A DNA stretch of 64,000 bases from Trichosphaerium sp. ATCC 40318 (GCA_038496445.1 JALMLS010000627.1:202972-266971), one strand, 5' to 3'. Counted from the first letter of the stretch, positions 2,119-62,764 are shown. A program made the numbers and translations. Notes: generated by a model from the letters alone, not told the origin.

Positions 2119-3336
2119 CTAAATTTTCCAGACAACATCTACTTTGGCATCTTTTAACACATTAACAGCTTCTTCTGTAACGTTGGTGCAATTCTCAAGA
2201 TAAATTGATTGTACACATTTTAACTCTTTTACTCCCTCATCTGTTATTTGTTCACAACCCATGAGAGTAATGTTATGGCACCCTCTCAGCACTTTGATAC
2301 CTTCGTCATTTACTAGGGTATAAGATAGATCTATCGTGTGAACCCCTTCAAGTGCTTTTAAGCCTTCTTGTGTTATTCTTCTACAACCCCGAATATTAAT
2401 GTTGTGAACCCCTTTTAGAGCTTTGATGCCTTCATCACTTACTGAAGTATAACACAAATTAATGTTATGAACTCCTCCTAGCGCCTTGATGCCTTTATCA
2501 CTTACTAAAGTATTAGATAGGTCAATAGTATGGACGCCAGCAAGGTGTTGTAGCCCTTCATCTGTCACTTGACAATTGTAAGGTAAATCGAATAAACTCC
2601 TTTTAGCGCCTTGACGCCTTCTCCAGTTACTGAAGTATTTGAAAGATTAATAGTATGAACACCACCTAGTTCGCTTATGCTTTCATCTGTTATTTGCTTA
2701 CATCTTTCAAGATTAATAGTATGAACACCTTTTAGTGCTTTAACACCTTCATTTGAAACAAATGTTCCACGAAGATCAATTGTGTGAACGCCAGCTAACA
2801 ACTCGATTCCATTGTCTGAGACGTACATACACCCACTGAGATCAACAGAGTGAATGTTTTGAGCAATTGCTGCAAGATCATAATCTGTACATTGTGAAGT
2901 CATTCTAAAGTTTTTACATCCAGGCAATAATGAGTAAATACTGAAACGCTTAAGATTAAGTAGTGAAATCTGACTATTGTTCATCACACCCTTGTACTCT
3001 TGTATCTTTAGAAAATCTTGTAAATTTGAAGGGAACACGTGTTTGTATCCAACAATATCATGAATAATATCAGCAAAAACACTACAAGATTGAGCAGCAG
3101 AATATCTTGAACGTGAATCTGTATAATCTAGAATATTTGAAAGAACCTCAGGTGGAAGACCTAGAATACTTTTTTCCTTTTGTTGTGTTGATTTTGTAGG
3201 ATCACTAGTTCAAGTCAGAAGAGAACCTATGTAAGCAAAGGTGAATTGTTTTTTGAAACCAAACTTTCCAGGAAAATAAAAACAGAAGTTACAAAAAACC
3301 TACTTGCTACCTTGGAGAATCTGCGATAAGGCTCAT
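2119..3336 (-). CDS. F-box + short-LRR protein (LRR1) with one 5' intron and one frameshift near 2580 (pseudogene or consensus error)
   Basis: ATG 3336 (MSLIADSP), phase-2 GT-AG intron, F-box-like ILGLPPEVLSNILDY, then 21/22-aa repeats LxGVHTIxLxx(C/T)xxTDEGxKA. ORFs 2565-3038 and 2119-2568 join if one T is restored (CTT TAC AAT TGT). Confidence 0.8.
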
Positions 3337-3400
3337 ATGTGAGGTTGTACACGGCTCTCCTAAAAACCTCACACATGACCTCACTCACAAAGGGTAATTG

Positions 3401-3817
3401 TTAAAGTTGATTTTCTTTCAAAAGGCAAGGAGGCTTGAAAGAGCAAATCTCGTACAGTATCTTTTGTTTGATTCTTGGAAGCGTGAGATCATCAATCCTG
3501 TCAGAAGATACAGTCTTACGACTATGTGTGCCAGTGTTGTGTTTGTAGAGAACGTTATCAAGTTGTTCTTCTAAATTTGCGTTTACAGCGTTCAAAACAC
3601 TCCCAACTTGTTTTACTAGCGTTTGGTGGTGTAATGGATCTATGATTTTATTGTACGCTTTCGCGTGGTTATCGCGATAGTATTTTAATGCTTGTTTTAC
3701 TGTAACACCTAAAAAACTCATGAGGTTCACTTGATGTAGATTGTGATAAATAACTGATTTTAAGCCACGTGATTCGGAAAAAAATTGCACGTGACAAGTT
3801 GTATAGTAGTTGTTCAA
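3401..3817 (-). CDS. Orphan ORF, hypothetical protein
   Basis: 138-codon ORF with protein-like composition. No recognised family; true start uncertain. Confidence 0.3.
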   Translation of the reverse strand: MNNYYTTCHVQFFSESRGLKSVIYHNLHQVNLMSFLGVTVKQALKYYRDNHAKAYNKIIDPLHHQTLVKQVGSVLNAVNANLEEQLDNVLYKHNTGTHSRKTVSSDRIDDLTLPRIKQKILYEICSFKPPCLLKENQL

Positions 3818-4421
3818 GTCAACAAAGCTAGATCGTATAACAGAGCTGTAGTACGCACAAGAGGCACAGATACAAGCTTTGCTTGTTTATCAAATAACAG
3901 CTTTGCATTTGATTGTGAACCTCAAAATGCCATTACAGTCCAGAGTGTTGTTCCTGTTATTGTTAGAGCAAGTTGAGTTTGCTTTAATTACAATGTTATT
4001 GTACCTGATGAAAGCAAGTGTCGCCTAACTCACATGCAGCCATTGATGGTGAACACTTAATGGCTACCAAAGTTGTTGCAAAATTGAATGATAGACAATG
4101 TTCAAGCGCCTCACAAATGACCATTTCGATCAACAGTGAGTGCTATACTATTCGCATCATATATTCAATATCATAGTTGTTTTCAGGCATCTCAACAACC
4201 CTCTTGCCTTCACCTGCACAATACTGTTAACATTTAAAACACGCAATATTATACTTCTTGTGCATATAAACTTCTTTTATACTTTCCAGCCCCTACAACA
4301 CTCCATTTACACTACCTATGCTATTTGGTAGATCATTCGCAAAATGTACCCAAATAATGCTGCCTTTAGAAGTCACTTTATTTGGTTATTAAGTTCAGTT
4401 GTCTTTTAATTTTACTTCTGT

Positions 4422-5528
4422 CTAACGGTAAATATTACAAGCGTTGGACAGAACTTTAATCCCTTCATCTGTAATCTTGTCACAAGCTCTCATAAAAATA
4501 GTATCAACACCAACAAGTGATTTAAGGCCTTCATCAGTAATATTCCCACACCAATCAAGGTGAATAGTGTGAACCCCTGCCAAAGCTTCTAATCCTTTAT
4601 TTGTGACAAGAGTTTTTTTGAGGTCAATTTCATGAACTCCTGCCAAACACTTTATTCCGTCATCTGAAATGCCAAAACAGTGCTCAAGATCAATGGTGTG
4701 AACACCTTTGAGTGCTTTCAAACCTTCATCTGTTATGCCAGTGCACATAAGCCCAATAGTATGAACGCCTGTCAATGCTTTTATTCCTTTGTCTGTGATA
4801 CCAGTACGTCCAACATTAATACTATAAACACCAGCTAATGCTATTACACTTTCATCTGTAACGTCAGTGAACGCAAGGCTAATTGTGTGAACACCTGCCA
4901 GCGATGTAACACCTTCATCACTAATACTCTTACACCCTTCAAGACAAATTGTATGAACACCACTAAGAGCTTTTAACCCTTCATCTGTAACACAAGTAGC
5001 TGCAAGGTTAATATCATGAACCCCTGATAAACACTTTATTCCTTCATCTGTAATACTCTTACACAGACGAAGATTTATCACGTGAACACCTGAAAGTGCT
5101 TTCAAACCTTCATCTGTAATTCTACAGAAAGAAAGGTTAATTGTATGAACGCCAGCAAGTGCTTTTACACCTTCATCTGTTATCTTCTTACAAAATCTAA
5201 GATTAATATTGTGAACGCCTGCAAGTGCCTTGACTATTGAGTCTGTAACATTTGCACTCAGCCGAAAATCAATATTTTGAATGCCTGCGAGAACTTTAAG
5301 TTTCCCATCACACACTGCGTTTGTCACTCTAACTTGAGTATGCTGTAGAGCTCCTTTATACTTTATAAAAGTCAGTACACTATCTATAGTCTTTAATGTC
5401 GCTCTTTCGTATCCAATGATATCATGAACAATGGCAGAAAGAGTGCGACAGCTCTGAGCAGCTGGATATCGTGATACAGTTGTAAAACAGAGAATATGTC
5501 CCAAAATCTCATTTGGTAATCGTAGCAT
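4422..5528 (-). CDS. F-box + short-LRR protein (LRR2), intact and intronless
   Basis: 368-aa ORF; N-terminal MLRLPNEILGHILCF F-box-like motif followed by about 13 repeats of 21/22 aa. Confidence 0.9.
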   Translation of the reverse strand: MLRLPNEILGHILCFTTVSRYPAAQSCRTLSAIVHDIIGYERATLKTIDSVLTFIKYKGALQHTQVRVTNAVCDGKLKVLAGIQNIDFRLSANVTDSIVKALAGVHNINLRFCKKITDEGVKALAGVHTINLSFCRITDEGLKALSGVHVINLRLCKSITDEGIKCLSGVHDINLAATCVTDEGLKALSGVHTICLEGCKSISDEGVTSLAGVHTISLAFTDVTDESVIALAGVYSINVGRTGITDKGIKALTGVHTIGLMCTGITDEGLKALKGVHTIDLEHCFGISDDGIKCLAGVHEIDLKKTLVTNKGLEALAGVHTIHLDWCGNITDEGLKSLVGVDTIFMRACDKITDEGIKVLSNACNIYR

Positions 5529-6687
5529 AAAGCACTCTGAACTGTGTAATGGCTCTCTGTTGATAGTTAATGTCGAATGTACATTAAATTGTGAAATTGT
5601 GCCTCAAAGATGCCATACTAGGCTTGTGTCCTTTTTATACTCTTTGTGTAATTCACCACAAGTCACTACGCAAATAGTAGACCATTGTCATAGGGTTAGT
5701 AAACAACAGACGCCGAACTACAGTCAAACAAAATCTATTTATTTCGCACGTGGCCACAACTCTACCAAACGCGATGGAAACACCTTAAATATTACAACAA
5801 CATTGATTGATGTTTTAATCAACCAGACAACGCGTGAAGAAACAAATAAAAAGATTTATTTCGTTACAAGTCTTTGTTAAATGCGTGTCGTGATGTGCTC
5901 TGAAAAGTGAGCACTTTGGACGATTTCTGTACGTCTCCTTTATTTTTCGTGTCTTGTAGTTATTTAAACTCAAGAACGTATACAGTGGCTTCTACAGTAT
6001 CTCCGTTTTTAACGACATGTTCCATCGACAACATTGGTTGTTATTTTCTCTAACGAGACAGATTGTAGCAGAAGAGGAAACCTCTTTGCTCAGAATTACA
6101 GAAATGTATTGCTTTTGTTGCGACTAACTATGATTCGGTTGTCTTATCACGTGTTGGATGTAAACACCTAGAGTCATACCAGGTATAATGCCAATCTCGC
6201 TCGCAAGGTTGGGTGGTTTTTCCAAGCATCAACCAACAGGCAACACTGATGGAGTGTACGTCTACTTAGCGAAAAACAAACAATAACTTCGAAAAAGAGG
6301 CAATTTGTTGGTTCACTAAGTAACCTATCAGATAAATCTACTAAAAAGAAACGAGGTTGGGTTGGGTAGTGGTGACAGACATAACGTGAAAAATAGCCAC
6401 GCACAAGTTGGTACGCCAATTAGCCTTTTATGGAAATTTTTTGTACCGCGCGTTTTTTCTTCATTGCACATAGCAGCTGGTATAACCACAATTGTGCAAT
6501 CGCCTTTACAACTTAAAGGCGAAATATCTAACGCTAACGTTAGTAAACTACCAACTGAGCCTATCGTTACCTCAGTACAGGCTAGAATAGGCGAAATAAA
6601 CCAAAAAAAAGTACGTCACCAACAAAAAGTCTGATTTGACCGTTTTGTACTTACCCGAAGATTGCAGTCAGGACAAAAAAAAACAAC

Positions 6688-9600
6688 ATGAACTTCTTCA
6701 GAGTGGGCATTGTACGTCTACAATTCATTACCCGCAATCTAACGTTACTTTTAAAGACGCTCGCGTTTGTTGCATTCCTTGCACTTACTGTTCGTGCTCA
6801 ATTAGATATACAAGAGGATGATACGGTTCACCACACTTTTGCTGGTCAATTTACACGCCTCGGGTCTTTCGAAACTGGTGAGTTGAGTTTCACATTTTTT
6901 TGCGGTTTTTGGAATTAGGTGACTTGGGAAAAGTGATGGAAGGTGCTACCGCGCTTTCCTTTCAACGTTACTTGCATACCCGTAGTTCTCCTGCGTTCCC
7001 CTCATTTCTAAATTGTAACCTTGCCTTGTTCCGTTTACTAAACGTACTGCCAAAGGATTTGGGTTCGCTGCGCTTAAAGGAGGTAGTTTCATCACTGAAG
7101 ACATCTCTCCTCCTCCTGGTGTTGGTGTTTCAGGTGACAATGTAAACGACATTATCGTTACTCCTTCTGGTATCATTTTCGTTGCTATTGAGGAATATGT
7201 GTTCCAATTCACACCAGAAAACAATGAATGGTTACAAGTTGGTGAGAAATTCAAGTACGCTCTCCCCTTTCACACCAAATTACGCCACATTTACTCAAAA
7301 AAGAGTAAACCGAAACATAGCCGCACAACGAATTATTACAAAAACAGCTTTTTATTGTTTACCTTTGTTTCTTGTTGCGTTAAATACTTCAAATGAAACT
7401 AACTGTTGACTCTTTAGCTCAGACGTACGTGGGCTTGCTTGGGACTCAGCTTCAAACCAAATCTATGCTTGTGGTGGCTTCTCTAGACTTGAGAGTTACA
7501 CTAACATTGCTGTGCACAATACTGCTGACGTACGCTACACTTACCATTCTAGAAAATACGTTTTAACATGTTGGTGTAGAGCACTTTTATGAATCTTTGG
7601 GCCGAAATAGCAGTTAATGTTACTGGCACTCCTCTGTGTGATGTTGGTGGTCTATTTTTTATTCCAGGTGCAACCAACGGCATTGAGCTCCTTATTCAAT
7701 CCGGCTCCCGATTATGGTGGCAAAACGATCTGACGTGGACAAACGACAGAAACAGTGTCAATGTCTCCAGCAACTTGCTTACCGACACAGTTAATTTGAG
7801 AATGTGGCGCGAAACCGAGAACACTGGAGTAATCTATGTCACAAATCCCAATGGATTTACACTTAATGTTACTGGTCAAAACGCCAGCGACATTTGGGAT
7901 GTCATCTCAACAACTGGTACGAGTTTTAAAACGACGTTATCTACTTTCTGATTCAATTTTGTCTGACATTCTATTTAGATGGTGTTGAGTTTACAGGTGT
8001 ATTCCGTTCCGAAAAGTTTGCCGATATCGATGTAGAGATCAGGAACAATCCTGAAAACACAATCACTTATTTTACAAGAAACGCTAATACACGTGTGTAT
8101 GCTGTTGATGAAGCATCCAGCACAATCTACTTTGCTGCCACAAGAACCACCACTCAACTTGATCCTGATCGGGAAAACCAAGTAAACGGTACAGAGCAAG
8201 TAAGTTACACAAGAGTTGGTCTGTTCTCTGCTTCCACAACAATCCAAACACCTCAAACTTCCGAACAAGTGACAGCCCTCGGTGAAGTATTTTCTGCCGA
8301 CACCTGTATCTACAGTATGTTCTACGTTGGCAAACTTGTCTTGGCAGTTGATGGTGATTGTACATACCAAAAGCGAGTTGCTTTGACTGCAGCCAACATT
8401 GGTCTCATTGGATCCAAATGTGGTCAAACTGGTGCTGCCATCAATAGAAATGGTGCTTGTTACACCAACCCTGCCTACGCTATTAACACAAGGTATGCCT
8501 TGTTTGGTTAAAAACCATTGATTTCTGATATTTCACACTTATCGTTACAAATAGGTTGAGCAACTCATTCTTGGAGTTGACAGACGCCAACACACTTGTA
8601 CCAACACTCGGTGGTGGTGTTACTGGAACTGTTTCTGCAGTTACTTTGAGAGAAGGTTCTAATGATATGCTCTACATTATTGGTGGAGGTGTTACAGAAA
8701 CTTGGAACACCACAGCATATGGATTGGCCGCTTTGGTCACAAGAGGTGGAGAATGTACGCCATTTTTATGTTTTTCGCTTTCTTTTGAAAGAAAAGATTC
8801 GCTGTACAAGCCCAAACCACTTTCAGTCAAAAAAGCGACCTCCCGCCCTACTTTTAGTTCCTATTGGTCGTTGCTTATGCGCTTCTAGCATTCTACGTAT
8901 CTATGTTTAATCCAAATATTGTGATTTCAAGTGTTTTCTACGACCAGCAATATGATGGCATCTTTAACGTTCTAGAATACAACAATGAGATCTTTGTTGC
9001 TGGACAATTTGCCTACCTTGGCCTCAACGGTAAGTGCTTCTTACACATATTAATACCTTTTTACTTACAACTCTTGTGTTTGTTTAGGAAACACAACATT
9101 CAATTCAATTGCAAAACTAAATGTATCTGATGGAACATTTATGCCTTTGGGTTCTGGAAGTACGTACTCTTTTTTTAATAATTGTTGTTCATGGTTTGAA
9201 CTACTTTTGTTTCTTTTGTGTTGTTGCTTCTTTATATATTAACTCTTGTTTGTAGTTGTTGACAGAACAGTGGTTGGACGTGATTTCCATGATGACTACA
9301 TCTCTGCTCCTGGTTCTGGTATGTAACATTGTTTTTTTGTTATTATTTAAAGTGAAGTGAATAACAGTTACTTGTAGTATCTGATATGGTTGGTAAGAGT
9401 AATAAACTATATGTCGTTGGTACTTTCAACACAGCTGGTGACCTTGCTTGCGCAAACTTTGCCATCTATGATTTAGACGAGGGTGTCTGGACAGTTCCTA
9501 ATGGTGAGTACTTCACTTTTACGATTTCTTTCTATTCTAACACATTGTAAGGTGGTGTTGATGGTATTATTTCCTCTATCGAATCTTACAAAAATTGGAT

Positions 9601-10443
9601 GGTCATTGGCGGTGTGTTTTCATTTGCTGGATCTGTTCAAACACCAAATATTGCTGGATACAATACTAAATCCGAGCAGTTTGAGAGACTTAACAGTGGT
9701 TTAAATGGAAAAATAAATGATATTCAAGTTGCAGGTAATAAGCTTATTGCTCTTGGAGAGTTTACTACAACAAACGCTGGTATCAGTACAATGGGTGTTG
9801 GTACGATAATTCTTTTCTGTTCTATAATTTTTGTAAACATACTTACAGAGTTTGTTAAGCTGAATTCTTTGACGACAAAGTATGGCGTGGTTTGGCTTGC
9901 AACTGCGCAACACTTGGTTGTGATGATGAAAACGTTGGTTTTGCTTGTCTCAGACTTACGTCTAGCGGTGTAGGTTACAGTTTAAATATTGTTGGTTTTA
10001 CCGCATTCATGTTCCACTCAACTGGAGTCTACGGATTGCGCACTAATGACATTTCATTCCCACCACAAAACCTTGGATCTCTTCTCAATGGAGATTCTGC
10101 TCAATCTACCACTAGAATTCTTGCTTCCACAAGAGGTATCAATGGCCTTCCAAGTGGTGCACAGGTAATTTAAACAGCAACTTTTGTTTGTGTGAAAAGT
10201 GTTGACAGTTTATTTTAGGCTTTGGTATTTGGTACAACTACTACTGGTTCTGGTAACAGTGTTAGCAATGCAAATGTATTGCTCGGTGGCCGTAATGTTG
10301 CTAGATACCCATTTGGTGGTATGCCAGCAGCGCTCAATGTAACTGATTTCGCAACACCAGCAATAACTGCAATCAGTTCTGTTGGAAAACTTGCTGTATC
10401 TGCTGTTCTCGGTTTGGTTTGCATCTTTGCTCTTTTGTTGTAA
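6688..10443 (+). CDS. Beta-propeller (Rax2-like) surface protein, copy B; complete, multi-exon; signal peptide and probable GPI signal
   Basis: Spliced N-terminus MNFFRTLAFVAFLALTVRA (signal peptide). Blade motifs HTFAGQF, IYACGGF, IFVAGQF, VIGGVF, IALGEF. C-terminal hydrophobic tail identical to copy A; stop TAA 10443. Confidence 0.8.
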
Positions 10444-10979
10444 ACAGCTTAGCAATAAATACTTTAACCTGTTCATGTTGTTCAGAGCTTTTTTTTTGGC
10501 TATCGTGGTCTGTACTAAGGAATTTCGGCTAGTTTAAAGTTGAGTGTATGCCACTTTGGTTTAATGTTGCGTTTGAGACATTTTACCTTTTTAAAGTGCT
10601 CAGTAGGCTCCTAGTTGTTAGAAGTGAATCGGTTGTTATCTTTTTACAATCACCATAACAGCGTTGTACAATAATAATATTTTTTTCTTCTTTACACATA
10701 TAAAAAGTAGTTACAAATACAATTGCGAGTATTGATTGGAGCTCATTAGGTGTATCAATCATGCTTAAACGCTCTGTTGTGACAGACTAGTATGTGAAGG
10801 CTAATAAAGGCTTTCCGTGTAAGAATACTAGTGATTGATTTTTGATCGATTTCCAAATGAAGTTTAATTAGTATATTACTAACTTATGTGCCGCATCACA
10901 ATGAGAAAAGAGCTGCACAAGTACAACACGGTATTGTAGCTTTCATATCAATCAATACAGAAATAAACAATCTTGAAGC

Positions 10980-11005
10980 TTTACTTTACTTTACTTTACT
11001 TTTAT
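10980..11005 (-). repeat. (GTAAA)4 pentanucleotide tail of the retrotransposon
   Basis: + strand reads tttactttactttactttacttttatt. Confidence 0.85.
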
Positions 11006-11210
11006 TCCGGTCAAGATTCAGTTTGACGGTCTTACAAATTTGTTTTTACAACTGTTTTGTCCTCCCATCTTCATCCACTTGTCGCCAGGGCCCCTGATAG
11101 GGGTCTCACATAAAGTTAGCCCATGATATTCATCATCGACCAAGGTAGACCAGACTGTGTAGAATACCTGCCCAGCTCGGACCGCGCACTAGCTCCGTAT
11201 GGAGGCGTAG

Positions 11211-12575
11211 CTAGTCAGTGTTAGTAATGTTGAGTTTTTTATATAGCTCATGAAACATGATGTTTCTTTTATCGTAGACGCGTTTGTGGCCATTCAGTAT
11301 TCGGAGTTGCAGCTGTTTGAGTTTGTCTTTGATGTATTTCGGGTCATATCCTGCATATTTACATGCTTCAACTGTGTTGGTTAAGATGTATGCTCCTGTG
11401 TACGCTTCTCTAGCGTATTTAGTTTTTTTTGCTTTTTTGTTTTTTCGTTTCTTGGTGTTGCGGAGGTTTTTATTGACGTAGTTTTTGATTTCCTCTGTAT
11501 TTTCTGTACGTACATCTTCAGTTGCTTTACAATGGTTGATTATGTGATCTGTATCTTCTTTGTGGTGCCCGCATAGTATGCAGCTGGGTTCCTTGTATTT
11601 TTTGTTGAAGTAGTCAGTGTTGTGTGGTCCAGTGGCTTTATTTAGTGTGTATCTGCCACTTAGGTTGTTGTTTCGCAGTTTAAATTGGAAGGTGGTGATG
11701 TTGTCCATTAGTGGCATTTTGTCGTTGATGACTTGATTGGATATCTTATGCTCAACTTGTGTCAGGATTGGGAGTTTGGCATTCATGTCTTTTTCATGTA
11801 TTTGGTTACTGATGTTTCTGATCCGTTTACGGATGTTTCCTTCAATGATTTCATTATCATTGTATAAGGTGTAGTTGAAGGCTACTCGTCTATTCGGCGT
11901 TGGAGGCTTCTTTAAGTATGTTCCTTCCTTTGCTAGGGTGTCCGCTTCTTCGTTTCCGTGAAGAATCCATTCTATGTTTTTACCAAATTGTTTCTCAAGT
12001 GCTTTAAGTTCTTTGTTTAGGAGTTCCAGCTTCTTAGGTTGGTTTGCGTATTTCTTTCTTTTTTCTTCTACATGACTGGGTACTTTCCAGAATTTTGTGT
12101 ATGATTTATGTTTGTCTCTTTGTTTGATTGTTTGTAGGATTTCTATGATGAGTGATGCATTGTACGCATTCATTCTTTGAGAGTGTTTCCATTTGTGCCA
12201 GTTTTCGACCGCCGTGATGACGTATTTGGAGTCTGTGAAGAGGTTGATGTTTGAGGTCTGGTGTGTGTTTTTGAGTGCCCAGAGTGCAGCTTCTAGCTCG
12301 GCTGCGTCAACTGTGTTTCCGGTAATGCATGGTAGCGCTACATTGTTAGGGGAGCTTCTATTGAAGTACACTCCGAAGCCTGCTGTGTCGCTGTGTTCCA
12401 TCTTGGAGCCGTCTGTCCATATGTCCACTGTTTTGCTGGGTTCAGTGGGTGGTTCCCATTTCTTATATATTTCGTAGTGTTGTGGTTGTTTGATTTTGAG
12501 GTGATTTCGTATTTTTCCATTTCTTTTTGAGATCAGTGCTTTCAGTTGGTTTATGTAAGTTGGTGTGACGTATTG
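11211..12575 (-). CDS. C-terminal fragment of retrotransposon ORF2: RNase H and C-terminal CCHC knuckle
   Basis: RNase H motifs IWTDGS, AAELEA, FTDSKYV, KVPSH, GNEEADTLAK; zinc knuckle CILCGHHKEDTDHIINHC. Confidence 0.85.
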   Translation of the reverse strand, partial: QYVTPTYINQLKALISKRNGKIRNHLKIKQPQHYEIYKKWEPPTEPSKTVDIWTDGSKMEHSDTAGFGVYFNRSSPNNVALPCITGNTVDAAELEAALWALKNTHQTSNINLFTDSKYVITAVENWHKWKHSQRMNAYNASLIIEILQTIKQRDKHKSYTKFWKVPSHVEEKRKKYANQPKKLELLNKELKALEKQFGKNIEWILHGNEEADTLAKEGTYLKKPPTPNRRVAFNYTLYNDNEIIEGNIRKRIRNISNQIHEKDMNAKLPILTQVEHKISNQVINDKMPLMDNITTFQFKLRNNNLSGRYTLNKATGPHNTDYFNKKYKEPSCILCGHHKEDTDHIINHCKATEDVRTENTEEIKNYVNKNLRNTKKRKNKKAKKTKYAREAYTGAYILTNTVEACKYAGYDPKYIKDKLKQLQLRILNGHKRVYDKRNIMFHELYKKLNITNTD

Positions 12576-12883
12576 TTGAAGCGTACTTTCAATCAAAAGT
12601 ATAAGCCAGTTGCAACTTAATGTTTCTTATTTTTTGAGTGACCAACGAAAGAAACAACAAGAGCTTTGACAATGACAAAACAATTTTACGCCGTAAAACA
12701 GCTATCTACCTTATTCATAGCGTATTCGTGCGTAAGACAAGCCTTCTTTACGCTATATTTCATAATATACTCGATTTCAACCGAAACGGTATGTCATTTA
12801 TTGTTTGCGCTATTTCTTAATGATATTTCGCTATTTAGGCACCTTGGTGGCGTGGAAGACAAAGAAAAGAAAACTTTGAATAT

Positions 12884-13309
12884 ATGTTTCAATCAGGCTG
12901 TTATTTGGCCCTTTATTACATCGCTTATTGTATTATTTTAAATATTGATGATATCATGTCTTATGTACTAAACCCCGCGTTTTTTAAGAGGCACGTGTCT
13001 TGGAAACTGAAGTTTTTTATCAATCTTGACAATCCAAAAAAAGGACTTTCGTTTTCAGCGATTAATTATTGTTGTAGGCATTTTGAAGACTTCAAAATCC
13101 TATGGAAGCGTTTAGGGTTTCCTACTGCACAGAAAAAGGAAGCAACTGTTCTTGTATACTATCGTACAATCAAGAAAATAATCAACTCTGCGATTGGATA
13201 CTTAAAGGCTGCAGACCAGTACTTTGTGATGTTTGTCAAAAACAGGACCAAAGAAAATTCTGGAGATACTAAAACTAGAACTTGTTTAAAGGCCTCTATT
13301 GTAGACTAG
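12884..13309 (+). CDS. Orphan ORF or exon, hypothetical basic protein
   Basis: 141-codon ORF; shares KKxxNSAxxxLKxxxx(Y/W)xVM with the 33695-34921 gene. Confidence 0.35.
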   Translation: MFQSGCYLALYYIAYCIILNIDDIMSYVLNPAFFKRHVSWKLKFFINLDNPKKGLSFSAINYCCRHFEDFKILWKRLGFPTAQKKEATVLVYYRTIKKIINSAIGYLKAADQYFVMFVKNRTKENSGDTKTRTCLKASIVD

Positions 13310-13578
13310 CAAACTGGTAAAAGGTAGATTAAAAGGACATCGTTAACAAGACATGTCAAAGCGTTCTGTATTACTGCAACAATAGCTTGTAGTTAACTAA
13401 ACAACGTAAATAATGTATAAAACAAATTAAAAAGCTATTCGGTTGCCACTCTCGGTTTTTTATTGCTTATCTCGGCCGTTTCGCGTTAGTCGAAGGATAG
13501 ACGCTATTCATGCTACTTTGAAAGGTTTCGTGTTGGGTCTTGAGCGTTCAAATGAAATTGCAGAATCAGTACAACAAA

Positions 13579-17387: not shown

Positions 17388-17567
17388 AGAACCCTTTTGT
17401 TCATACAGTCTGTGCTCAGTATTAAAATAAACCTAGTGCTTACCACGCAGCTGATTTAACCTTATCCTCACTAACTTTATTTGTCGTTAATCAACACATG
17501 TAACAACCTTAAATTCCGACATATACAACGCTAGAAAATGTGGTTTATTTTTAGAATGCCTTGTTTA

Positions 17568-19763: not shown

Positions 19764-19816
19764 GTTGAACAACTTGATGATAACGTTCTGTTTTACTACT
19801 TACTCTTGTACAATTG

Positions 19817-21831: not shown

Positions 21832-23019
21832 ATGGACGCACCTACGCTTGCATCTATTAGCTGTGAAGAGCTCACAGTTAGTATAAACAACAAAAGCATG
21901 GTTTATATCCAACGTACTCAAAAAGAAAACAAAACATGCTTAGTGTTCGTACATGGCTTTCCAGGTATGCTCAGTGTGCCAGCTCTCCTATTTATCAGCC
22001 CTTCAAGACTCATACTGGTCATGGGTTCCAGTTGTACCATTTCTGAAGCAGACTGATGTATATGCGGTTGATCTAATAGGCGTACGCACTATTCTTATTC
22101 TTTTTTGTAACGGTACTCCTCTAACAACACTTGTAGTACGGCAAGTCATCTAAAGACGTAAAGGTACATTACTTGCACTATTCTGAACATCCATCTAAGA
22201 GCTTCCGTGAAAGGATTTCGATCCAGTGCGAGATGTAGTTGAATTTATCACAAAATTAAAACTAGACACAAAATATGAAAGTCTATGCTTAGTAGGTCAC
22301 TCAATGGGCACAGCCATAGTAAAAAAAGTTGCACAGCAGCGTCCAGATCTCATTCAAAAACTTGCATTAATTGGCGGTACTACAACCTGTACGACTTGCG
22401 TATTCACTCTGTTAGGTACTGTAAATATTGGACCTGTTGCAACAGAAGGTTTGGGCGAATTCAAACTTCCAGGAGCAATAACCAAAGAGAGTACAACTGA
22501 ATTTCAAGCTGGTTGCGTCAATTGTGAAACTGCACCTTGGTACGTACCTGCTAAGTGCTTGCAATAAATAGCTTATTATGAATAGGCTCATGCCTAAAGT
22601 AATAGATATGAGCCTGAACACTCCAAGGGAGTCTTGGGTAGCAGGTATTGAATGGATGGAGAAAGATCTTAACAACGATCTTAGCAACATCAAGTACAAC
22701 CAAATATCGTCAGTTATCATTCTTATGTTACTATCTTAGAGCTCCTACAGCTGTCATCTATGGAGAAGGAGAAACTTTTTTCCCTGCTGATGTTCAGGTA
22801 ACGTTTTAAACGCTGTATTCCAATAACTAACTTTATATCCTAGAAAGAACTTGTAGGTTCGATTCCAAATGCAACACTTTTCCCTATTCCTAAGGGCGGA
22901 CATTCGGTGCAATTTGAGGTACAAAACGGCTAACCTCAGGGATGAAATAACTTATTGGTTTTTTTAAGTTTCCAGAGCAAGTCGCCAAAATTTTGCAAGA
23001 ATTGTGTCAAAAAAAATAA
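21832..23019 (+). CDS. Alpha/beta hydrolase, multi-exon
   Basis: VFVHGFPDS, DLIGYGKS, nucleophile elbow LVGHSMG, C-terminal GGHSVQFEFPE. Confidence 0.9.
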
Positions 23020-28312: not shown

Positions 28313-29939
<1,627 letters not shown>

Positions 29940-39719: not shown

Positions 39720-40533
39720 CAGAAAACGGGCTATATAGGCTCCATTGATTACTTTGTTAACTTGATCAGTCACTTTAATTGGTACCTGTAAGACTAATTG
39801 CGTGAACACCAACAAAGTACTCCTCTCCTCTATCACTTACATTGTGAAGTTAAGATTAATCGTTTTCCCAGTCAATACAGTCAGCCCTTCATATGTAACT
39901 TGATGACACTTGTATAAATGAATGGTATGAACACTTACTAAAGCCTTAATACCGTCATCTGTAACCTGTGTTTCATTAAGATTAATAGTGTGTACACCTG
40001 CTAAAGCCTTGATCCCAACATCTGTAACCTTTGTTCGCTGTAAGTTTATCGTATGAACACCAGCTAAAGCCCGAATACCATCATCTGTGATACCTTCACA
40101 TCTTCCTAAACCTATTGTATGAATTCCAGCTAATGCCTTAATGCCTTCATCTGTAATGCCATTACAGCAAGATAGATCAATGTGTTTAAAAGCTTTAAAA
40201 TCAGATGGTTTCAGTGGTGATGTGCCATTTTCATATTCAAATAGGACACCATACGCTCCTTTGAGGTACTTTAAATGTTGACGTTCGATAAAGAATTTAA
40301 TGGATAGAGTGTTTGTCTTGATGAGATGTGGCATTTTTTTGAATAGTTTTTTGAGCTGTTGTTTGGATTTGATCACTCTTCTATTTTTATCCCACGTGCT
40401 GTATTGCGATTTTTAATAATTTTGATGTACGTACTACGTAAGGCATAGATAGAGGCGAAACGAATTGTAAAATAATAACAATAACTTCAACAGGGATATC
40501 ATCAAAGACTGCGCTCTTTGAGTTCGTCGCCAT
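39720..40533 (-). pseudogene. F-box + short-LRR gene (LRR3), disrupted
   Basis: ATG 40533, F-box-like FDDIPVEVIVIILQF. Frame breaks near 40395, near 39842 and near 39778; LRR-like sequence continues past the 39837 stop (VSDRGEEYFVGVHAISLTGT). Confidence 0.75.
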
Positions 40534-42740: not shown

Positions 42741-42918
42741 AAAAGATATCAATTTCACGTGATTGATAAAAATAAACTTGTTGTTCAAAGCACATGATCG
42801 CTCAGTTTATTACTTTATATCTTTTAAAATCGATCTGGTGTAATATGTAATCTCCAAATTTAACAATGTAGAATCTCCTTTTTGAACACCACATTTTGAA
42901 CCAAAAAATGACATTGAT

Positions 42919-43894
42919 TTATTTGGAATTGACCCGAGCAATGTCATTTTTAACACTTTGACCATTCTCATACATCCGTTTTATCATCTCTCCTGAGCGT
43001 AACCAATATAAACACTCTCCATTTTTAAAGCCGTTTACACAGGTGTAAGACTCTTTCAGTTGTCCATTATAATACCACTTTTTAACCTCACCGTGCATTT
43101 TGCCATTTACACAATCACATTCTGACCCAAGTTGTCCATTGTCATACCACCACTTACATTTTCCTTCCATTTTACCTTTAACATAAAACATATGTTCGCT
43201 AAGTTGACAATTGTCATACCACTCATAGTAATCTCCTTCTATTTCATCATCAACAGTAACATACACTTGAGATAGGTTACCATTCCTATACCATCGTCTA
43301 ACCTCACCAGTCAAAACATCATCAACGTGATAACACTTTTCATACAATTGTCCATTATTATACCATCTCTTGTGCTCTCCTTCTCTTTACCATTAACAAA
43401 ACTACCACATATCTCCAATTGGCCATTACAATGCCAATGCCTAACCTCTCCATCTATCTTACCTTTTACATAAAACAAACGTTTGTGTAGCTTGCCATTT
43501 CTGTACCAACGCTTATACTCTCCATCAAGTATACCTTCTGAGAAATAGCAATGTTCATATAACTTGCCATTGGCGTACCAATTCTTTGAATCTCCGTCCT
43601 TCAAGCCGTTGACGAAGGTACATTGACGCATCAACTTTTTACGAATGTACTTTTTCCATTTACCATGTTTCGCGTTGTTGTTATCAAATCTAATCATTGA
43701 CGCTTGTTTTGACAATAAAGGCCATTTGTAGTATATTTCTATGTCAAGATCTGTAATATCAAGCTGTAACTCCGTTGGAAGATGCACTATGACGTCGTAT
43801 GGGAGCTCTTGAGACAAAACCTTTAAATTCTAACGTTGGTACTGAATATGTTGTTAAATCATCAACGTACATTTAAACTGCGCTTGCGAGACAT
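42919..43894 (-). CDS. MORN-variant (YwqK-like) repeat protein with F-box-like N-terminus; one 5' intron; frameshift near 43387
   Basis: Exon 1 MSRKRSLN then gtacgt...ag; LPTELQLDI motif; repeats GExKxWYxNGQL...VNG. ORFs 43311-43817 and 42919-43347 join if one A is restored. Confidence 0.8.
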
Positions 43895-44169
43895 CTTCGC
43901 GCTATGAAACGTCAGAAATTAGCCTTGTTAGTTTCAACAGTGTTTCACGCGTTTTCCCTTGCTTAGGGCAGTGTTTACGTAATGCAACTTATTTACACAC
44001 ACTCACAGTGTGCTAGACGTAAAAAATTGGAATAATTGTCGCTACCTTATCACGTGTTCTTAAGACAGTTCAAGAATTGTAAAAAAGCGTTTATGTCTAG
44101 CTATAGCTATTGTGTTGTGTATGAAGGCTATTGTATTTGTTGACTGTTTAAGCCATTACAAGATCATAG

Positions 44170-47100: not shown

Positions 47101-47835
47101 AGTATTAGCGTCACCGCTCTTTATTAATGCTCTGAATGTGATTGTCCCTGTGCCCTTTGGTGGGGCGATAAACAAAATAGTTGACCGTAGGGCTTCAGTT
47201 GAGCGCTTGCATGCATCAATGTGTTGGCACAAGTACTGTGATTGTAACTCCAAGGCAACTGGAAAACAGCTAAACACACTTTGTAAGCGATCCGAAAAGA
47301 CAAGAAAAGGTAGCTCAAAAACCGTTCACGCACGTGGGAAATCGTCTGGTAACTTCCATTCACCCACGTGATTATTGTTTTCATCTTCAGCATACCTAAA
47401 GCGCAGTATTAGTCCGTGGTTTAGGCGATAAGGGAAAAGACCAAGACAGGTTTGTAAACGTACATCATTAATCCTCTGTACTTTGACCAGTACTTCAAGG
47501 TTAAAACGGTTATGTCGATGATACTCCCAGGTATGTACTCTTTCTGAGGGTATTTTCTTTACCGGCAAAGACCATATACTTATCAGTACGAACTGTTTTC
47601 GTTGCCCAACTCATAATTGGTTTTGGTGTAGTATCACATCTCAAGCGGTTTGGTACTTGTATTTTCTTGCCTCTGTTTATTGTTTTATTTCTCCAATCTG
47701 TTGGAGGGCAACCCCACATCGTTGAAGTGGCGTCACAAGTGAAAACTGTATCATGACTAGCACTTGAAGCTGAAAGCGAACTCGTAACAAGAAAACTAAA
47801 GCAACCACAACGCAGTAGTATAATACCGCTGACAT
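44170..47835 (-). pseudogene. Decayed secreted Cys-rich protein gene with a reeler-like domain
   Basis: Signal peptide at ATG 47835; reeler-like YIPGSIIDITV..KYRGLMMYAED..VGEW and APPKGTGTITFRALI; Cys-rich modules. At least 5 frame breaks (47548, 47190, near 47030, near 46625, near 44490) and an in-frame TAG at 44387-44389. Confidence 0.7.
45460..46275 (-). CDS. Nested spliced orphan gene (about 180 aa, basic NLS-like N-terminus) inside the reeler pseudogene
   Basis: ATG 46275 MKRQRGNDTVK; three GT-AG introns give a continuous frame into ORF 45460-45792 if the G7 run at 46008-46014 is off by one base. Confidence 0.5.
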
Positions 47836-49191
47836 TGTTATCTAGAGCAAGATTAGAAAGTTCTCTTTGTCAGAAAAAAAAGATCACGTGTCTGTACAAA
47901 ATAGTACTTTTAAGCTAAATCAAGATAAATGTACCTTGTTTTATCCAAAGCGATCAGCGTTGCTGTTTGATGCAGTTTGTTTTGAAAAAAAAGAAAAACA
48001 AAACTAGTACAACAGTGCACATTTGAGCTGAAACGAGAGGGGAAGTTTGCTACACAAAGAAATCGGTATAAACCAATTGATTGGTAACTATACAAAACAA
48101 TTACATACACATAAAAGTTTGGGCCACGATTTGGGTCAAAGTATTATGCTATTGGCTGCGGGACATTAGTTTTCTCGCACAATTTTCTTTACTTGAAATA
48201 GTACTTATTATTAGTCCGGAAGCTAACACAGTACCACTGCGAATATGATACGCATACAAAGTTCTATGTGAGTTCAAGAAAAAATAGAAAAAAATGACAT
48301 TTAACAGAATTATGTGTAGAACCTACCTCGAAAAACGTGGTTGTACTACTTTCGACATCAAAAAGATATTTGCCAGCTCTGAAAAACAGTTTTTGATAAG
48401 TACAAGAATGTGAGACTTGAGGAAAACCTACAAAAGCATGTATTGTTATGTTACTTGATAGATAGCATGAAGACATTGCTGCCTTTTTGTTTGCTTCTAG
48501 CCGCTGTTGTAGCCATTGTCAAAGTAGGTTGATGGCCCATATACTTCACTGACTATCATGTATTCGCTGGCAGTAATCTGTAAACTCAACGGAACTACTT
48601 CGGATTTGACTATTGATACACACGACTCAAGTGCGTTTTTGTTCATCGCCTGTTTGAGCATGTAGTTTGTTTTAGTTACCGCCAATCACCCGTCATTAAC
48701 AGTATAAGGCATTAAAGTGTTTAGGCTATGAGTAATGATGGATTGTCTTGTCGATAACAGCTCCTACTTTTCTTCAAATTATACAAAGAAACCAAAACCT
48801 CCACGTTTGTACGAGCATTTGTAAATTCGACACTAAGTCAAAACAAAACGTCTCTTTAAAATTAGAAACACAGTTTTTGAAGACTAAGAACATTCCAATG
48901 CAATTTCCACCAGAAAAGTACAGTTGATGGTATGTGCTAGTTCAGCTGCTCTTGTGTTATAACGTTACAGTAGCGTCGCTACTGAAAAGTCTACTTCTCG
49001 AAAAATCTCCGCAATACGTTTTTCGTCATTCCCGGTTTGGGTGTTGCACAAAAGTACTTTGCGTTTCAATAGAGTATTGGCGGTAGTTCATAGTACTGTT
49101 GTAGTATAGTTTTGTACTGGTTGGTGTTCAAGCAAAAGAGGAAAAAGTCAAGTTTGGTTATTTCCGGATAAACAGTATACTAACACCAAGT

Positions 49192-50466
49192 ATGAAGCTA
49201 TTCCTTGTTTTTCTTGCCACACTAGCCTTCTGTATTGCACAAAACCCAGAGGGTTGCCAACAATGCAAGAGTGTACGTACTAGTGCTTTGTCTGCTTGAA
49301 ATTCTTCTTATCTTACTCTCTGATAGCTTGTTGCTGAAGCCGAACAGTTAATGGAGCGTAACCACGATAAAACAGTGATGATTGGTTATATCAAATTCGT
49401 ATGCGACTTTGTAACTAAGGGATCGCTCAACAAGAAAGTACGTCGATAAAACTATCGGAAACCAGTTTTAGCGTTCGAATCTCATTGTATTCTAGTGCGC
49501 TGAGCTTGCAAACACTCTCTATGACAATAAAACTGCCCCAGAAAACTTTTGCGTACTATTTGAAGTATGTCCGGCACCAAAGGTACTCAAAAGACGCAAT
49601 TACTTGTTTTGTCAAGATTTTTTCCTAACTTTTCGTTCTCTTTAAAGGTAGAAGAAGAGCCTGTTGGCGGAATTGTTCAATGCCAACTTTGCGAAACAGC
49701 TGTACACGCACTTGACGGATATTTGGCCAAAAACGCTAGCGTTGAAAAGATTCATGATGCGCTTACTAAACTATGTGATGCCCTTGGTGGTGCAGCTTCA
49801 GTTTTCGTGCGTCTTTTTCAAGGATTTCAAGCGGGAAAAGAAGAAAGTTGTTTTTTTGTCCTTGTTTTTGAGTCTTTTGCGTTCCTGTTCATTTTTTTAA
49901 CATACCGATGTAGTGTGATACTTTTAATACCGTAGAAAATATCAAGAAGGTTGTAGGACAACTTGAGAAGAAGTACAGTGCTAAAAAAATCTGCACAATG
50001 GCAGTACGTGACACTCGCTACTCCTTCATTTTGATAAAATAATGGCATTTTGTTCAACCTTATATACTCATTTACTGTAGCACTTGTGTGATGCTTCAGC
50101 TCTTTTGGCCGTCACTCCAACATACACTACATCCCAAGGTTGCTCTTTCTGCAAAGTCGCCTATTCTTCCGTTGAAAAGTGGGTAGCATCTAACTCTACT
50201 GTTGAATTTATTCATGAAAAACTTGATGAAGTATGTGATTCACTTCCAGCTTCTTTCCATAAAATTTGCAAATCTGTTACTACAACTGAGTACATTTCCG
50301 AACTAATCAAGTACGTAAAGCCCAAAACAAAAGCTATATGCTCGTGTGAGACATTTTTGTTCCGTTTTTGTTCTTTAATTTCCGTCTTGGCTAACACGCT
50401 TTTGTTAGAAGTGTTGAAGCCTATCACACACCAGAGGAAGCATGTGAAAGCATTGAATTGTGTTAA
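49192..50466 (+). CDS. Secreted protein with three saposin-B domains, multi-exon
   Basis: Signal peptide MKLFLVFLATLAFCIA; CQQCK, CQLCE and CSFCK domain starts with SapB cysteine spacing (LDEVCDSLP...ICK...PEEACESIELC). Confidence 0.9.
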
Positions 50467-50739
50467 GATACTACCAAAATAAAAGCAAAACCGAGTTCCA
50501 GCTATTGCACCTATAGTTTTTGTATGCAACAGTGTTACCTCTACTTTTCTTTTCTGCTACTTTTAACTGTATCCGTCACGGACTGTTGTTCTCTAGGCCA
50601 TGAAAGCAGCTAAAATATCAAGTGAAGCAATCAACATCTAATTAAGTGATATTAAATAACTCTTTTTGACATGTTAGAAAAAACTATTTATTCGCTTCTG
50701 ATAAGTAGTTTATTACAGAAGTTGTAAAATACATCCAAG

Positions 50740-52305
50740 CTATATAAGTACCTGTACACCAGATAGTGACTTTACAGCTTCATTTGTTAAAGAGTTGCAA
50801 TAGCTCAATCTTATTTTTCTTGTTCCCACATTGTTAAAAGCCTTTAAAGCTTCATCTGTAACATTTGTACCAGTTAAATCAACATGATATACACCCGCCA
50901 ATGACTTGATACCCTCATCTGTTATTGATCTACAAAATTGTAAACAGATGTGGTTTACTCCTACCAACGCCTTTAAACCTTCATCTGTTACGTTTGTATT
51001 TGATAAATCTATCTCATGTACACCCACCAATGCTGCAATACCCTCACTTGTTATTGACATACACATTTTTAAATAAATAGTGTGTACTCCAGACAATGCC
51101 TTTAAGCCTTCATCTGTAACATTTGTACGTGCTAAATCAATGTGATGCACACCAGCCAATGCCTTTAAACCTTCATCCGTTACATTTGTATTTGATAAAT
51201 TGATCTCATGCACACCTGCCAACGCCTTAATACCTTCATCTGTAATTGATCTACAATGACACAGCGTAATGTCATGAACACCCGCTAGCTTCTTCAAACC
51301 CTCATCAGTTACATCAGTATGTTTTAAAGCTATTGTATGTACTCCAGCCAGTGCCTTGATACCCTCATCAGTTACCATGGTATTGCTCAAATCAATCGTA
51401 TGAATGCCAGCCAACAACTTGATACCCTCATTTGTTATCAAGTCACAACCGCTCAAGCAAATAGCATGTGCGCTGTCTGCCAATGACTTTAAACTATCAT
51501 CAGTCACTTGAGTGCCATCTAAAACGATTGTATGTACACCAGATAAAGCCTTGATGCCTTCATCAGTTATCAATGAATTCTCCAAGGAGATACAATGCAC
51601 TCCTGCCAAAGCCTTAAAACCGTTATTTGTTATATTGGTTTGTTGTAAACTTATTGTGTGTACACCTGCCAGTTCAGCGACACCTTTATCGGTTATTGAT
51701 GAACAATAATCCAAGTTGATAGTATGTACTCCTGCTAGTGACTTTATACCTTCATCAGTCACAGATGTCTCTTCTAGATCTATTTCATGTACACCTGCCA
51801 ATGCCTTGATACCTTCATCTGTAATTAACTTGCAGAACCACAAACTGATAGTATGTACGCCTGATAGCGCTTTCAGACCTTCATCAGTAACATTTGTATA
51901 ATCTAAGATAATTGTGTGTACACCAGACAAAGCTTTGATGCCATCATCTGTTATCAATTTGAATTGATTCAAGTAGATAGTGTGTACACCTGCAAGAAGG
52001 CTCAAGTGACTATCAGTAAGCTTTTTTCTAAGAACATCCAAGTAAATAGGAGTATTCTGAAGCAAAACGCTACCAGACAGCTTTCCCAACTCGTTTTCGC
52101 TTGAGACTTCAATTTTATCGTAGCCTACGTGGTTTTGAACTATCTCAAGCATAAAATGGCATGTTTGTGCTGAACGGTGCTTAAACGTCCCATATTTAAG
52201 AATTTGTACTATAATTTCGACTGGCAGCGCAAAGAGGTCAAACAAGTAACCATCGGGACTATATTTCGTTTGCTGTATACTTGTATTGCTAAATTCATGT
52301 TCCAT
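50740..52305 (-). CDS. F-box + short-LRR protein (LRR4), intact and intronless, about 19 repeats
   Basis: 521-aa ORF; F-box-like LFALPVEIIVQILKY; regular 21/22-aa repeats. Confidence 0.9.
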   Translation of the reverse strand: MEHEFSNTSIQQTKYSPDGYLFDLFALPVEIIVQILKYGTFKHRSAQTCHFMLEIVQNHVGYDKIEVSSENELGKLSGSVLLQNTPIYLDVLRKKLTDSHLSLLAGVHTIYLNQFKLITDDGIKALSGVHTIILDYTNVTDEGLKALSGVHTISLWFCKLITDEGIKALAGVHEIDLEETSVTDEGIKSLAGVHTINLDYCSSITDKGVAELAGVHTISLQQTNITNNGFKALAGVHCISLENSLITDEGIKALSGVHTIVLDGTQVTDDSLKSLADSAHAICLSGCDLITNEGIKLLAGIHTIDLSNTMVTDEGIKALAGVHTIALKHTDVTDEGLKKLAGVHDITLCHCRSITDEGIKALAGVHEINLSNTNVTDEGLKALAGVHHIDLARTNVTDEGLKALSGVHTIYLKMCMSITSEGIAALVGVHEIDLSNTNVTDEGLKALVGVNHICLQFCRSITDEGIKSLAGVYHVDLTGTNVTDEALKAFNNVGTRKIRLSYCNSLTNEAVKSLSGVQVLI

Positions 52306-52556
52306 ACTGCGCGACAGTAGAACACAGTTTGGGATTGCTTGTGTGATTTGATGGACTGAAGAAACTAATGACTTTTTTTACCTGCTCTTGTATTTTTCAT
52401 ATTAATACGCTTAAGAGAAACTGCAACAATACGCAAATGACTTTAAAACATAAGAGATGTAATGACAAAACGTTTCTAACGTATTTGCAAACAGCTCTAT
52501 ACCTCCAAGGAACGTTTTCTATTAACGTTGTTGGTGTTATTGTGAGTGAGTATAGT

Positions 52557-52790
52557 CAAAGTACTGCGTGGAGTCCATACAATTAATCTTCATAGGACTA
52601 TAGCAGATGAAGGCATCAAACCATTGGCTGTGGTGGACATACCATTGATCTTGGTTGCACTCACGTGACAGACAAACGTATCAAAGCATTGGCTGGAGTT
52701 CATACTTGTTTACTTGAAGACACTCAAGTGACAAATACAGGCATAAGTTTTCTATCTGATGCTCATACGGTCTATTACAGGGTTTACAAA
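52557..52790 (+). pseudogene. Isolated fragment of about 3 LRR units, inverted relative to LRR4
   Basis: Translates to KVLRGVHTINLHRTIADEGIKPLA, then after a frameshift GHTIDLGCTHVTDKRIKALAGVHTCLLEDTQVTNTGI. No F-box and no start codon recognised. Confidence 0.8.

Positions 52791-55413: not shown

Positions 55414-62764
<7,351 letters not shown>

Follow-up and report, generated by a model that had tools for sequence, protein, structure and literature searches.

In F-box/leucine-rich-repeat (LRR) proteins, the F-box binds Skp1 and the LRR part binds the substrate, which is the textbook mechanism for this architecture. It is found in FBXL-type proteins such as Skp2, FBXL2 and FBXL17 and the plant TIR1, COI1 and MAX2, which have an N-terminal F-box, a linker and a C-terminal LRR solenoid. 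Expanded F-box families recur in eukaryotic genomes and are poorly understood, and amoebae are a meeting point of host, giant viruses and intracellular bacteria, all three of which carry the F-box/LRR architecture. We analysed a stretch of 64,000 nt from the amoeba Trichosphaerium sp. ATCC 40318 (GCA_038496445.1, JALMLS010000627.1:202972-266971), here called the window, in which five loci are built from F-box and very short LRR modules. These loci join a known kind, the expanded F-box/LRR families, and we think it likely that they belong to a lineage-expanded, amoebozoan multigene family of FBXL-like substrate adaptors with minimal LRRs, serving the SCF (Skp1-Cul1-Rbx1) ubiquitin ligase.

The draft genome of Trichosphaerium has 37.69% GC and 8.7 introns per gene, and for 1568–1581 of its gene models the best hit is a giant virus; the domains seen most often among these models are F-box and MORN, and genes of this kind were interpreted as having come from giant viruses (Tekle et al. 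2023, PMC10521059). The available part of the lateral gene transfer (LGT) table of that study mentions 'F-box' at least 139 times, and the donors that it names include Indivirus ILV1, with an 'F-box domain protein' as best hit. The published genes resemble the window loci in their GC content (37.69% against 38.0% for the window), in being intron-poor F-box genes in an intron-dense genome and in the company of MORN repeats, as a MORN locus is also present in the window, and the two sets are probably the same family. Unlike the present analysis, the published work lists LGT candidates by best BLAST hit, and does not deal with repeat architecture, subfamilies or variability. In bacteria, the amoeba symbiont Neochlamydia has an F-box/LRR expansion of 138 members, NEX1 (Domman et al. 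2014, PMC4209131), which, like a family that we found in a Proteobacteria metagenome-assembled genome (MAG), combines an F-box or F-box-like N-terminus with a variable number of LRRs in a large, rapidly diverged family; both differ from the amoebal loci in being bacterial effector candidates rather than host genes, with units lacking the VHT motif. In nematodes and plants, too, large F-box families have expanded in particular lineages and include pseudogenes and substrate-binding domains that vary; population or paralog data demonstrated positive selection in these families, and an immune role was proposed for them (PMC8120010, PMC8665587, PMC3030570).

Application of the pattern L.G[VIC][HYNDQ].[IV].[LFMV] to the six frames of the whole window gave 42 matches, all within the five loci named by an earlier note on this DNA and none outside them. 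A total of 44 repeat units was cut from the open reading frames (ORFs) at this anchor, half of them 22 amino acids (aa) long and half 21 aa (22 units each), which bears out the two short modules described in the earlier note, and the 18 residue pairs that it had listed after the leucine for locus 4 matched the extracted units exactly. The 22-aa 'C' unit reads VHTIxLxxCxxITDEG[ILV]KALAG and the 21-aa 'T' unit VHTIxLxxTxVTDEG[ILV]KALAG, and each family ORF matched the Pfam LRR_6 model (PF13516) with E-values from 1e-8 to 1e-40. The order of the units varies by gene, being CTCTTTCTC in locus 1, CCTCTCTTTCTCC in locus 2, CTTC in locus 3 and CTCTCTTCCTTCTTCTCC in locus 4, and modules do thus occur in differing number and order, as had been noticed. 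A nearly constant scaffold with changing x positions was likewise recovered: entropy over the 44 units was 0.3–1.4 bits at the scaffold positions V1, H2, I4, L6, T13, D14, G16, K18, L20 and G22 versus 3.0–3.6 bits at positions 7, 8, 10 and 11, with intermediate values at positions 5 (2.9), 21 (2.5), 3 (2.2) and 19 (2.0).

Units of this kind depart from those of FBXL proteins, which have a period of about 26 aa (LxxLxLxxCxxITDxxLxxLaxxCxx), by their period of 21/22 aa, by the alternation of C and T units, with half of the units having T rather than C at position 9, and by the conserved His-Thr at unit positions 2–3; the F-box and linker also carry a signature with few relatives, 63 in 1.84 billion proteins. 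Internalin/SDS22-like LRRs share the 22-aa period and the 'ITD' following the strand, and are unlike the amoebal units in that C or T replaces the ladder asparagine in the latter, which in addition belong to proteins with an F-box, no signal peptide and an intracellular eukaryotic context.

Two of the five loci are intact. Locus 2 (4422–5528, minus strand) is an uninterrupted ORF of 368 aa with an F-box (5409–5525), a linker and 13 LRR units (4425–5282; LRR_6 E 5.7e-33), and locus 4 (50740–52305, minus strand) is an uninterrupted ORF of 521 aa with an F-box (52120–52233), a linker and 18 LRR units (50743–51987; LRR_6 E 1.3e-40); the linker measures about 45 aa in both. Locus 1 (2119–3721, minus strand) consists of an N-terminal extension exon, a probable intron, an F-box (3045–3164), a linker and about 10 LRR units (2122–2855). 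The exon runs from the ATG at 3721 to about 3456, encodes 106 aa and is conserved in three transcripts, and the locus is collinear with P0001, a complete transcript (404 aa) of a relative, to which it is 43% identical in the N-terminal exon and 50–55% identical from the F-box through the linker and LRRs to the C-terminus. The putative intron has GT-AG solutions, for example 3455/3205, that would join both exons in frame. A single apparent frameshift near 2575–2580 is the sole coding defect of this locus.

Locus 3 (39720–40533, minus strand) is a pseudogene, in which the F-box (40390–40506) lies in a different frame of the three-frame translation from the linker and 4 LRR units (39840–40376), and a degenerate LRR tail (about 39778–39843) lies in the third, giving at least two apparent frame breaks. 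Locus 5 (52546–52772, plus strand) stands head to head with locus 4, and is a pseudogene remnant that lacks an F-box and retains about 4 LRR units, spread over two frames; its best DNA matches are loci 2 and 4 (approximately 71% over about 100 nt). All frameshifts are given as read from the assembly, and the one sequencing run found, a low-coverage DNA run with 5% of the sampled words, spans none of them, as it yielded only one contig of 245 nt (5353–5597). The count of two intact and three damaged loci in the earlier note, with loci 1, 3 and 5 being broken, stands, as does its statement that the repeat regions lack introns in an intron-dense genome, which is seen in the long uninterrupted ORFs among genes split into short exons. 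Its locus ends were right in placing five loci but needed correction for two of them, since locus 1 runs past 3336 to the ATG at 3721 and locus 5 spans 52546–52772.

We accepted the N-terminus of these proteins as a predicted F-box, based on profile and model evidence. In whole-protein Pfam scans, locus 2 matched the F-box-like model with E 3.3e-4, and its isolated N-terminus scored 24.5 bits against PF12937, for which the cutoff is 24.3; all 10 family N-termini tested matched PF12937, with a best E-value of 5e-10. A profile of these 10 N-termini searched against all PDB sequences found F-box proteins almost exclusively, with FBXW7 on top (4.8e-5) and further matches to FBH1, FBXW8, FBXO31, Legionella AnkB, FBXL5, cyclin F and FBXL2. 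An AlphaFold2 model of the N-terminus, made from a 7-sequence alignment (pLDDT, the predicted local distance difference test, of 76.6), has helices at residues 6–14, 17–26 and 28–38, and in Foldseek the 75-aa model comes closest to the F-boxes of D3/MAX2 and FBXW7, with a root-mean-square deviation of 1.3–2.4 Å and 30–34% identity. All subfamilies retain an LPxE[IV]L start as well as the three-helix prediction, and the F-box plus linker has the signature AQ[ST]C...[IV][IV]..[VI]GY, where the family consensus AQ[ST]Cxxxxx[IV][IV] lacks the usual tryptophan of helix 3. Together with the LRR_6 matches, the PF12937 matches, the F-box profile and the fold models uphold the proposed architecture, in which an LRR array comes after an F-box, as it does in substrate receptors of the SCF ligase.

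For the locus 2 protein, AlphaFold2 run on the single sequence gave a regular LRR solenoid, with a pLDDT of 77 overall and of 85–92 over the repeats. Each unit of the model has a beta-strand at positions 3–7 and a short helix at D14–K18, so that residues 3, 5 and 7 look towards the concave face, with positions 8, 10 and 11 located in the loop after the strand. The variable patch in this model is one edge of the concave face plus the adjoining loop. The x positions had been taken to form the concave ligand-binding face, and the model supports this to the extent that they lie at its edge, where each strand ends and the next loop begins. T3, which makes up the first concave row, and the preceding H2 are conserved; His2, which directly precedes the beta-strand, is kept in 39/44 amoebal units and Thr3, the first residue of the strand, in 25/44, and such a conserved row of histidines is unusual for LRRs. 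Fold matches to solved structures comprised internalins, of which InlF and InlA were the best hits, Leptospira LRR proteins, designed 22-residue LRRs, FBXL2-SKP1 (6o60), COI1 and FBXL17 (6wcq), and the best PDB sequence match of the repeat part was 4r58, a designed internalin-type protein (E 1.5e-13).

Relatives of the intact proteins are few and distant. No near-identical entry for the locus 2 or locus 4 protein was present among 5.8 billion clustered proteins, and the best matches were transcriptome ORFs of 42–45% identity; a word-based homolog search with residues 1–85 of locus 2 gave no matches, and exact look-ups found no record of the locus 2 protein or of the transcript P0124 described below. 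An exhaustive comparison of the F-box plus linker profile with 1.84 billion representative proteins gave 63 matches at E ≤ 1e-3, of which 14 were at E ≤ 1e-10. Ten of these 14 are transcripts with the F-box and linker of the family, including P0124, labelled MMETSP0405 (taxid 498012, Trichosphaerium sp. ATCC 40318), one from Clydonella and several with an 'mmetsp' source tag only, and the other four are long multi-F-box gene models, with the three looked up being from Caenorhabditis brenneri and Chlorella. The transcriptome data contained at least a dozen family transcripts in all. Among the matches whose sequences were inspected, the short GVHT-type LRR was found in eukaryotes only in Trichosphaerium and Clydonella, and three transcriptome proteins of other organisms, one of them Protostelium, had ordinary FBXL repeats of 25–26 aa.

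In a tree of the F-box plus linker region of loci 1, 2 and 4 with the transcripts of relatives, for which the alignment is short and the branches are long, locus 4 grouped with the Trichosphaerium transcript P0124 (support 96/98; 53% identity), locus 2 with P0005 and P0125 (support 90/93), and locus 1 with P0004, P0006 and P0001 (support 82/84). Each of these three loci is nearer to a relative's transcript than to any other locus of the window, and the tree, for all its limits, places the window loci in three old subfamilies rather than showing them as local copies of each other. The best DNA identity between loci was 66–75% over 100–240 nt. The birth-and-death that had been suggested is not supported as a recent process in this window by loci that are at most 75% identical in DNA and fall in three old subfamilies; signs of turnover are present, with 3/5 copies damaged, yet there are no young paralogs. 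At the level of single repeat units, the nearest unit by DNA was in the same locus for 38/44 units, compared with a mean of 12.8 and a maximum of 24 after shuffling of the labels, and shared the C or T type in 35/44 units. We therefore conclude that the arrays grew or were homogenised within each gene, and the module shuffling between loci proposed earlier finds no support in the individual units.

In the reading that we favour, the three-helix N-terminal F-box would dock on Skp1 of the SCF ubiquitin ligase, and a short linker would lead to a solenoid of 4–18 very short LRRs, in which 22-aa C and 21-aa T units alternate on the scaffold VHTIxLxx[C/T]x(x)[I/V]TDEG[I/L]KALAG. Positions 5, 7, 8, 10 and 11 may provide a gene-specific surface that selects substrates for ubiquitination. 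The family may have grown by old gene duplications into subfamilies and by unit duplication within genes, with some copies decaying to pseudogenes and the variable positions changing at about the neutral rate. By analogy with known F-box/LRR proteins, this division of tasks between F-box and LRRs is a reasonable proposal for the family in the window. Several observations weigh against this reading: the F-box score of single proteins is marginal, with E 0.085 for locus 4 in the whole-protein scan; the fold matches of the 75-aa N-terminal model are statistically non-significant (best E 0.19), although such E-values are weak because the F-box domain is short; binding to Skp1, of which no gene was identified in the window, is a prediction; neither intact protein has an identical or near-identical record in the protein collection (best 42–45%), which bears on the putative expression of the window's own genes; and in the available part of the published table only about 27 virus-column rows were detected in the transcriptome, with one of these being an F-box row (PMC10521059). 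The window offers a clear picture of the amoebal version, with the minimal 21/22-aa LRR of two alternating unit types, the family-specific F-box plus linker, the three subfamilies and the unit duplication within genes.

Of the other explanations, the one that survives best, and which we nevertheless consider unlikely, is that the loci are endogenised giant-virus F-box/LRR (and MORN) genes, multiplied or repeatedly integrated, mostly silent or decaying and without a host function. It agrees with the published giant-virus-like gene models, among which F-box and MORN are commonest, and with the available part of the table, in which most virus-column rows are undetected in the transcriptome and have 0–2 introns (PMC10521059); likewise, the window ORFs are intron-poor, with three of the five copies damaged, and GVHT-type LRRs are limited to Trichosphaerium and Clydonella among the eukaryotic sequences inspected. 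The nearest ESM Atlas clusters, which we treat as a lead only, are all F-box/LRR_6 proteins of Nucleocytoviricota. Comparison with viral proteins, in contrast, found similarity of the repeat part only: matches to proteins on giant-virus contigs had 31–38% identity and were confined to the repeat region, which is also the region that the published support rests on. Scans of the viral contigs with the single proteins of locus 2 and P0008 found nothing, and nor did a strict DNA pattern with GVHTI, and a looser pattern, ITDEGxKxL...HT, matched 10 loci on 8 viral contigs (two of them giant-virus MAGs), with up to 8 matches per locus; the ORFs at these loci have units of the form GIHTLxLxxNxNITDEGLKxLK.

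The giant-virus families resemble the amoebal loci in their unit of about 22 aa, [VI]HT[IL]xLxx[C/N]xxITDEG[ILV]KxL, in the same variability profile, in the presence of tandem paralogs and in the F-box-like N-terminus of some members. They differ in having mostly N or C at position 9 without a regular 21-aa T unit, and in N-terminal modules which, in the two groups sampled, are not detectably related to the amoebal module (hhalign probability 0.1–0.2%, no similarity). No viral sequence was recognised among the 63 matches of the F-box plus linker profile, of which those below E 1e-10 were inspected in part. As the N-termini are dissimilar and the repeats alike, what is demonstrably shared is the repeat type including its His-Thr, and not the whole gene. 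The LRR unit type is common to Nucleocytoviricota F-box/LRR proteins, and there will therefore have been gene exchange between amoeba and virus at some time, in either direction. BLAST-based calls of 'viral origin' for such genes draw on the repeat region alone, which bears on the massive virus-to-amoeba transfer published for Trichosphaerium.

Some of the viral contigs deserve description. One (L001) is densely packed with ORFans, among which lie genes for thymidylate synthase and the RNA polymerase subunit Rpb10, and two IMG/VR contigs of 90 kb (L013) and 1.15 Mb (L015) have tandem paralogs with an F-box-like N-terminus and LRR units. At L015:3904-7056 (uncultivated viral genome, UViG, 3300024991_000079), three tandem paralogs of 219, 307 and 477 aa share a nearly identical F-box-like N-terminus (MKLCNDVLNIIANYLPLKDAI...) followed by 22-aa LRR units, and some adjacent units are almost identical, which implies very recent unit duplication in a giant-virus genome. 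His-Thr at positions 2–3 is also present in these units, as [VI]HTL, at L015:3904-7056 and L013:2127-3557. The bacterial family mentioned above is located at L003:7013-16879 (Proteobacteria MAG GCA_020161545.1), where at least five LRR_6/FBXL15-like paralogs lie beside ribonucleotide reductase genes. Like the amoebal loci, these paralogs have 22-aa units, here ATTVxLSxCxxITDxGLxxL, from which the His-Thr is absent (ATTV), and one of them, P0042, has an F-box-like N-terminus; the set looks like an effector family of an amoeba-associated bacterium.

The surroundings of the window loci also speak against endogenised viral genes. Their neighbours are ordinary intron-split host genes (GAPDH, RPB1, saposin-like and alpha/beta hydrolase), no viral hallmark genes were found in the window, and the loci have 36–38% GC against 38.0% for the window, with no compositional anomaly. 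The scaffold of the repeats, moreover, is under strong purifying selection (omega, the ratio of non-synonymous to synonymous change, about 0.1), the transcriptome data contain at least a dozen transcripts of the family, and the N-terminal exon of locus 1, next to its putative intron, is conserved in three of them. Taken together, the host context, the N-terminal module specific to the family, the transcripts and the intron of locus 1 argue for a resident, functional host family, at least for some of its members.

Still less probable is that the family forms an immune-like repertoire of SCF receptors, diversified by positive selection and shuffling, which degrades proteins of giant viruses or bacteria. 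In its favour, the family is large, as judged from the 'F-box' mentions in the available part of the Trichosphaerium table (PMC10521059), pseudogenes are found beside intact genes, variable residues are located on or beside the concave face, amoeba viruses and symbionts carry the same architecture, and positively selected F-box expansions in nematodes and plants offer a precedent (PMC8120010, PMC3030570). Against it, the units cluster by gene and show no trace of having been shuffled among loci, young paralogs are absent from the window, and the variable positions gave no sign of positive selection. Over all unit pairs, the proportion of synonymous differences (pS) was about 0.7 and that of non-synonymous differences (pN) was 0.70–0.74 at positions 7, 8, 10 and 11, with both being saturated. 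The closest pairs by total distance had an omega of 0.56–1.05 at the variable positions, and those closest by scaffold distance 1.36–1.53, and we rejected both estimates, as these choices of pairs are biased down and up, respectively. With both choices biased in opposite directions, we preferred a held-out design, with pairs picked on half of the scaffold codons and pS taken from the other half, which gave a pN(variable)/pS of 0.98–1.01 and median Jukes-Cantor omega values of 0.93–1.10, all near saturation. The closest unit pair overall, with a DNA difference of 14%, keeps the variable residues S, N and N.

The variable positions thus change at about the synonymous rate; the excess of non-synonymous change that had been expected at the x positions was not seen in these saturated data, which fit neutrality and old diversifying selection alike. 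In this respect the amoebal family is unlike the nematode and plant F-box families, as the selection test, performed on saturated repeat units, showed no positive selection. A hypervariable face had further been taken as the mark of a repertoire, and the same profile turned up in 43 giant-virus-like units, with 3.0–3.5 bits at four of the five corresponding positions, 2.7 bits at the fifth and 0.4–1.7 bits across ITDEGLKxL, in a qualitative control restricted to these viral units, as the window and transcript sets mixed the 21- and 22-aa registers. As viral LRR proteins share the variability profile, hypervariable x positions on a fixed scaffold are a general property of LRRs of this class. 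On these data the family is a gene-family expansion of the ordinary type, and nothing measured here supports an immune function, important as that would be.

A related and slightly more doubtful idea is that the SCF-receptor library of the amoeba provides ubiquitin-based surveillance, and that giant viruses captured the same repeat type for use as a decoy or counter-weapon. If true, this would be a eukaryotic immune system of receptor diversity made from E3 (ubiquitin ligase) adaptors, in an arms race with Nucleocytoviricota, and a role of the family in defence is speculation. Finally, a degenerate F-box without Skp1 binding on a plain internalin/SDS22-like LRR scaffold, acting for instance as a regulatory subunit or adaptor, would fit whole-protein scores near or below the Pfam cutoffs, the missing helix 3 tryptophan and the designed and natural internalin-type 22-aa LRRs as best repeat matches, and is nonetheless very improbable against a profile search that finds F-box proteins almost exclusively, an LPxE[IV]L start and three-helix prediction conserved in all subfamilies, and the architecture of FBXL proteins.

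The remainder of the window contains few long reading frames, with only 10 ORFs of at least 150 aa in the 64 kb, four of which are pieces of the F-box/LRR loci. An association of the loci with mobile elements was considered and rejected, as neither inverted repeats nor direct repeats flank them. A probable retroelement remnant is the 461-aa ORF at 11211–12596 (minus strand), which matches RNase H (PF00075, E 5e-15) and, weakly, RVT_3; locus 2 is 5.7 kb away, and nothing was seen that ties this ORF to the F-box genes. A MORN-repeat gene (42919–43817, minus strand; PF07661, E 8e-13) is split over two overlapping ORFs by a frameshift near 43311–43347, and shares the minus-strand GC-skew signature of the LRR loci; Pfam detected no F-box in its N-terminus, even at E-values up to 1.

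Other host genes recognised on the plus strand are an alpha/beta hydrolase (22226–22567), the C-terminal domain of GAPDH in two exons (29234–29939) and two saposin-B-like ORFs adjoining locus 4 (49567–50482). A Rax2-like beta-propeller gene forms a direct segmental duplication (1–1867 and 8625–10473; PF12768 on ORFs 888–1271 and 9599–9973), with a spacing of about 8.6 kb and blocks of 99%, 94%, 81% and 73% identity, the copies of which bracket loci 1 and 2, and this mosaic of identities suggests gene conversion. At the far end of the window is the intron-split gene for RPB1, the largest subunit of RNA polymerase II (55451–62000, minus strand; domains 2–3 at 60169–60633), with a C-terminal heptad array at approximately 55557–56327 that has a 21-nt period and about 30 or more copies, many of which are non-consensus heptads.

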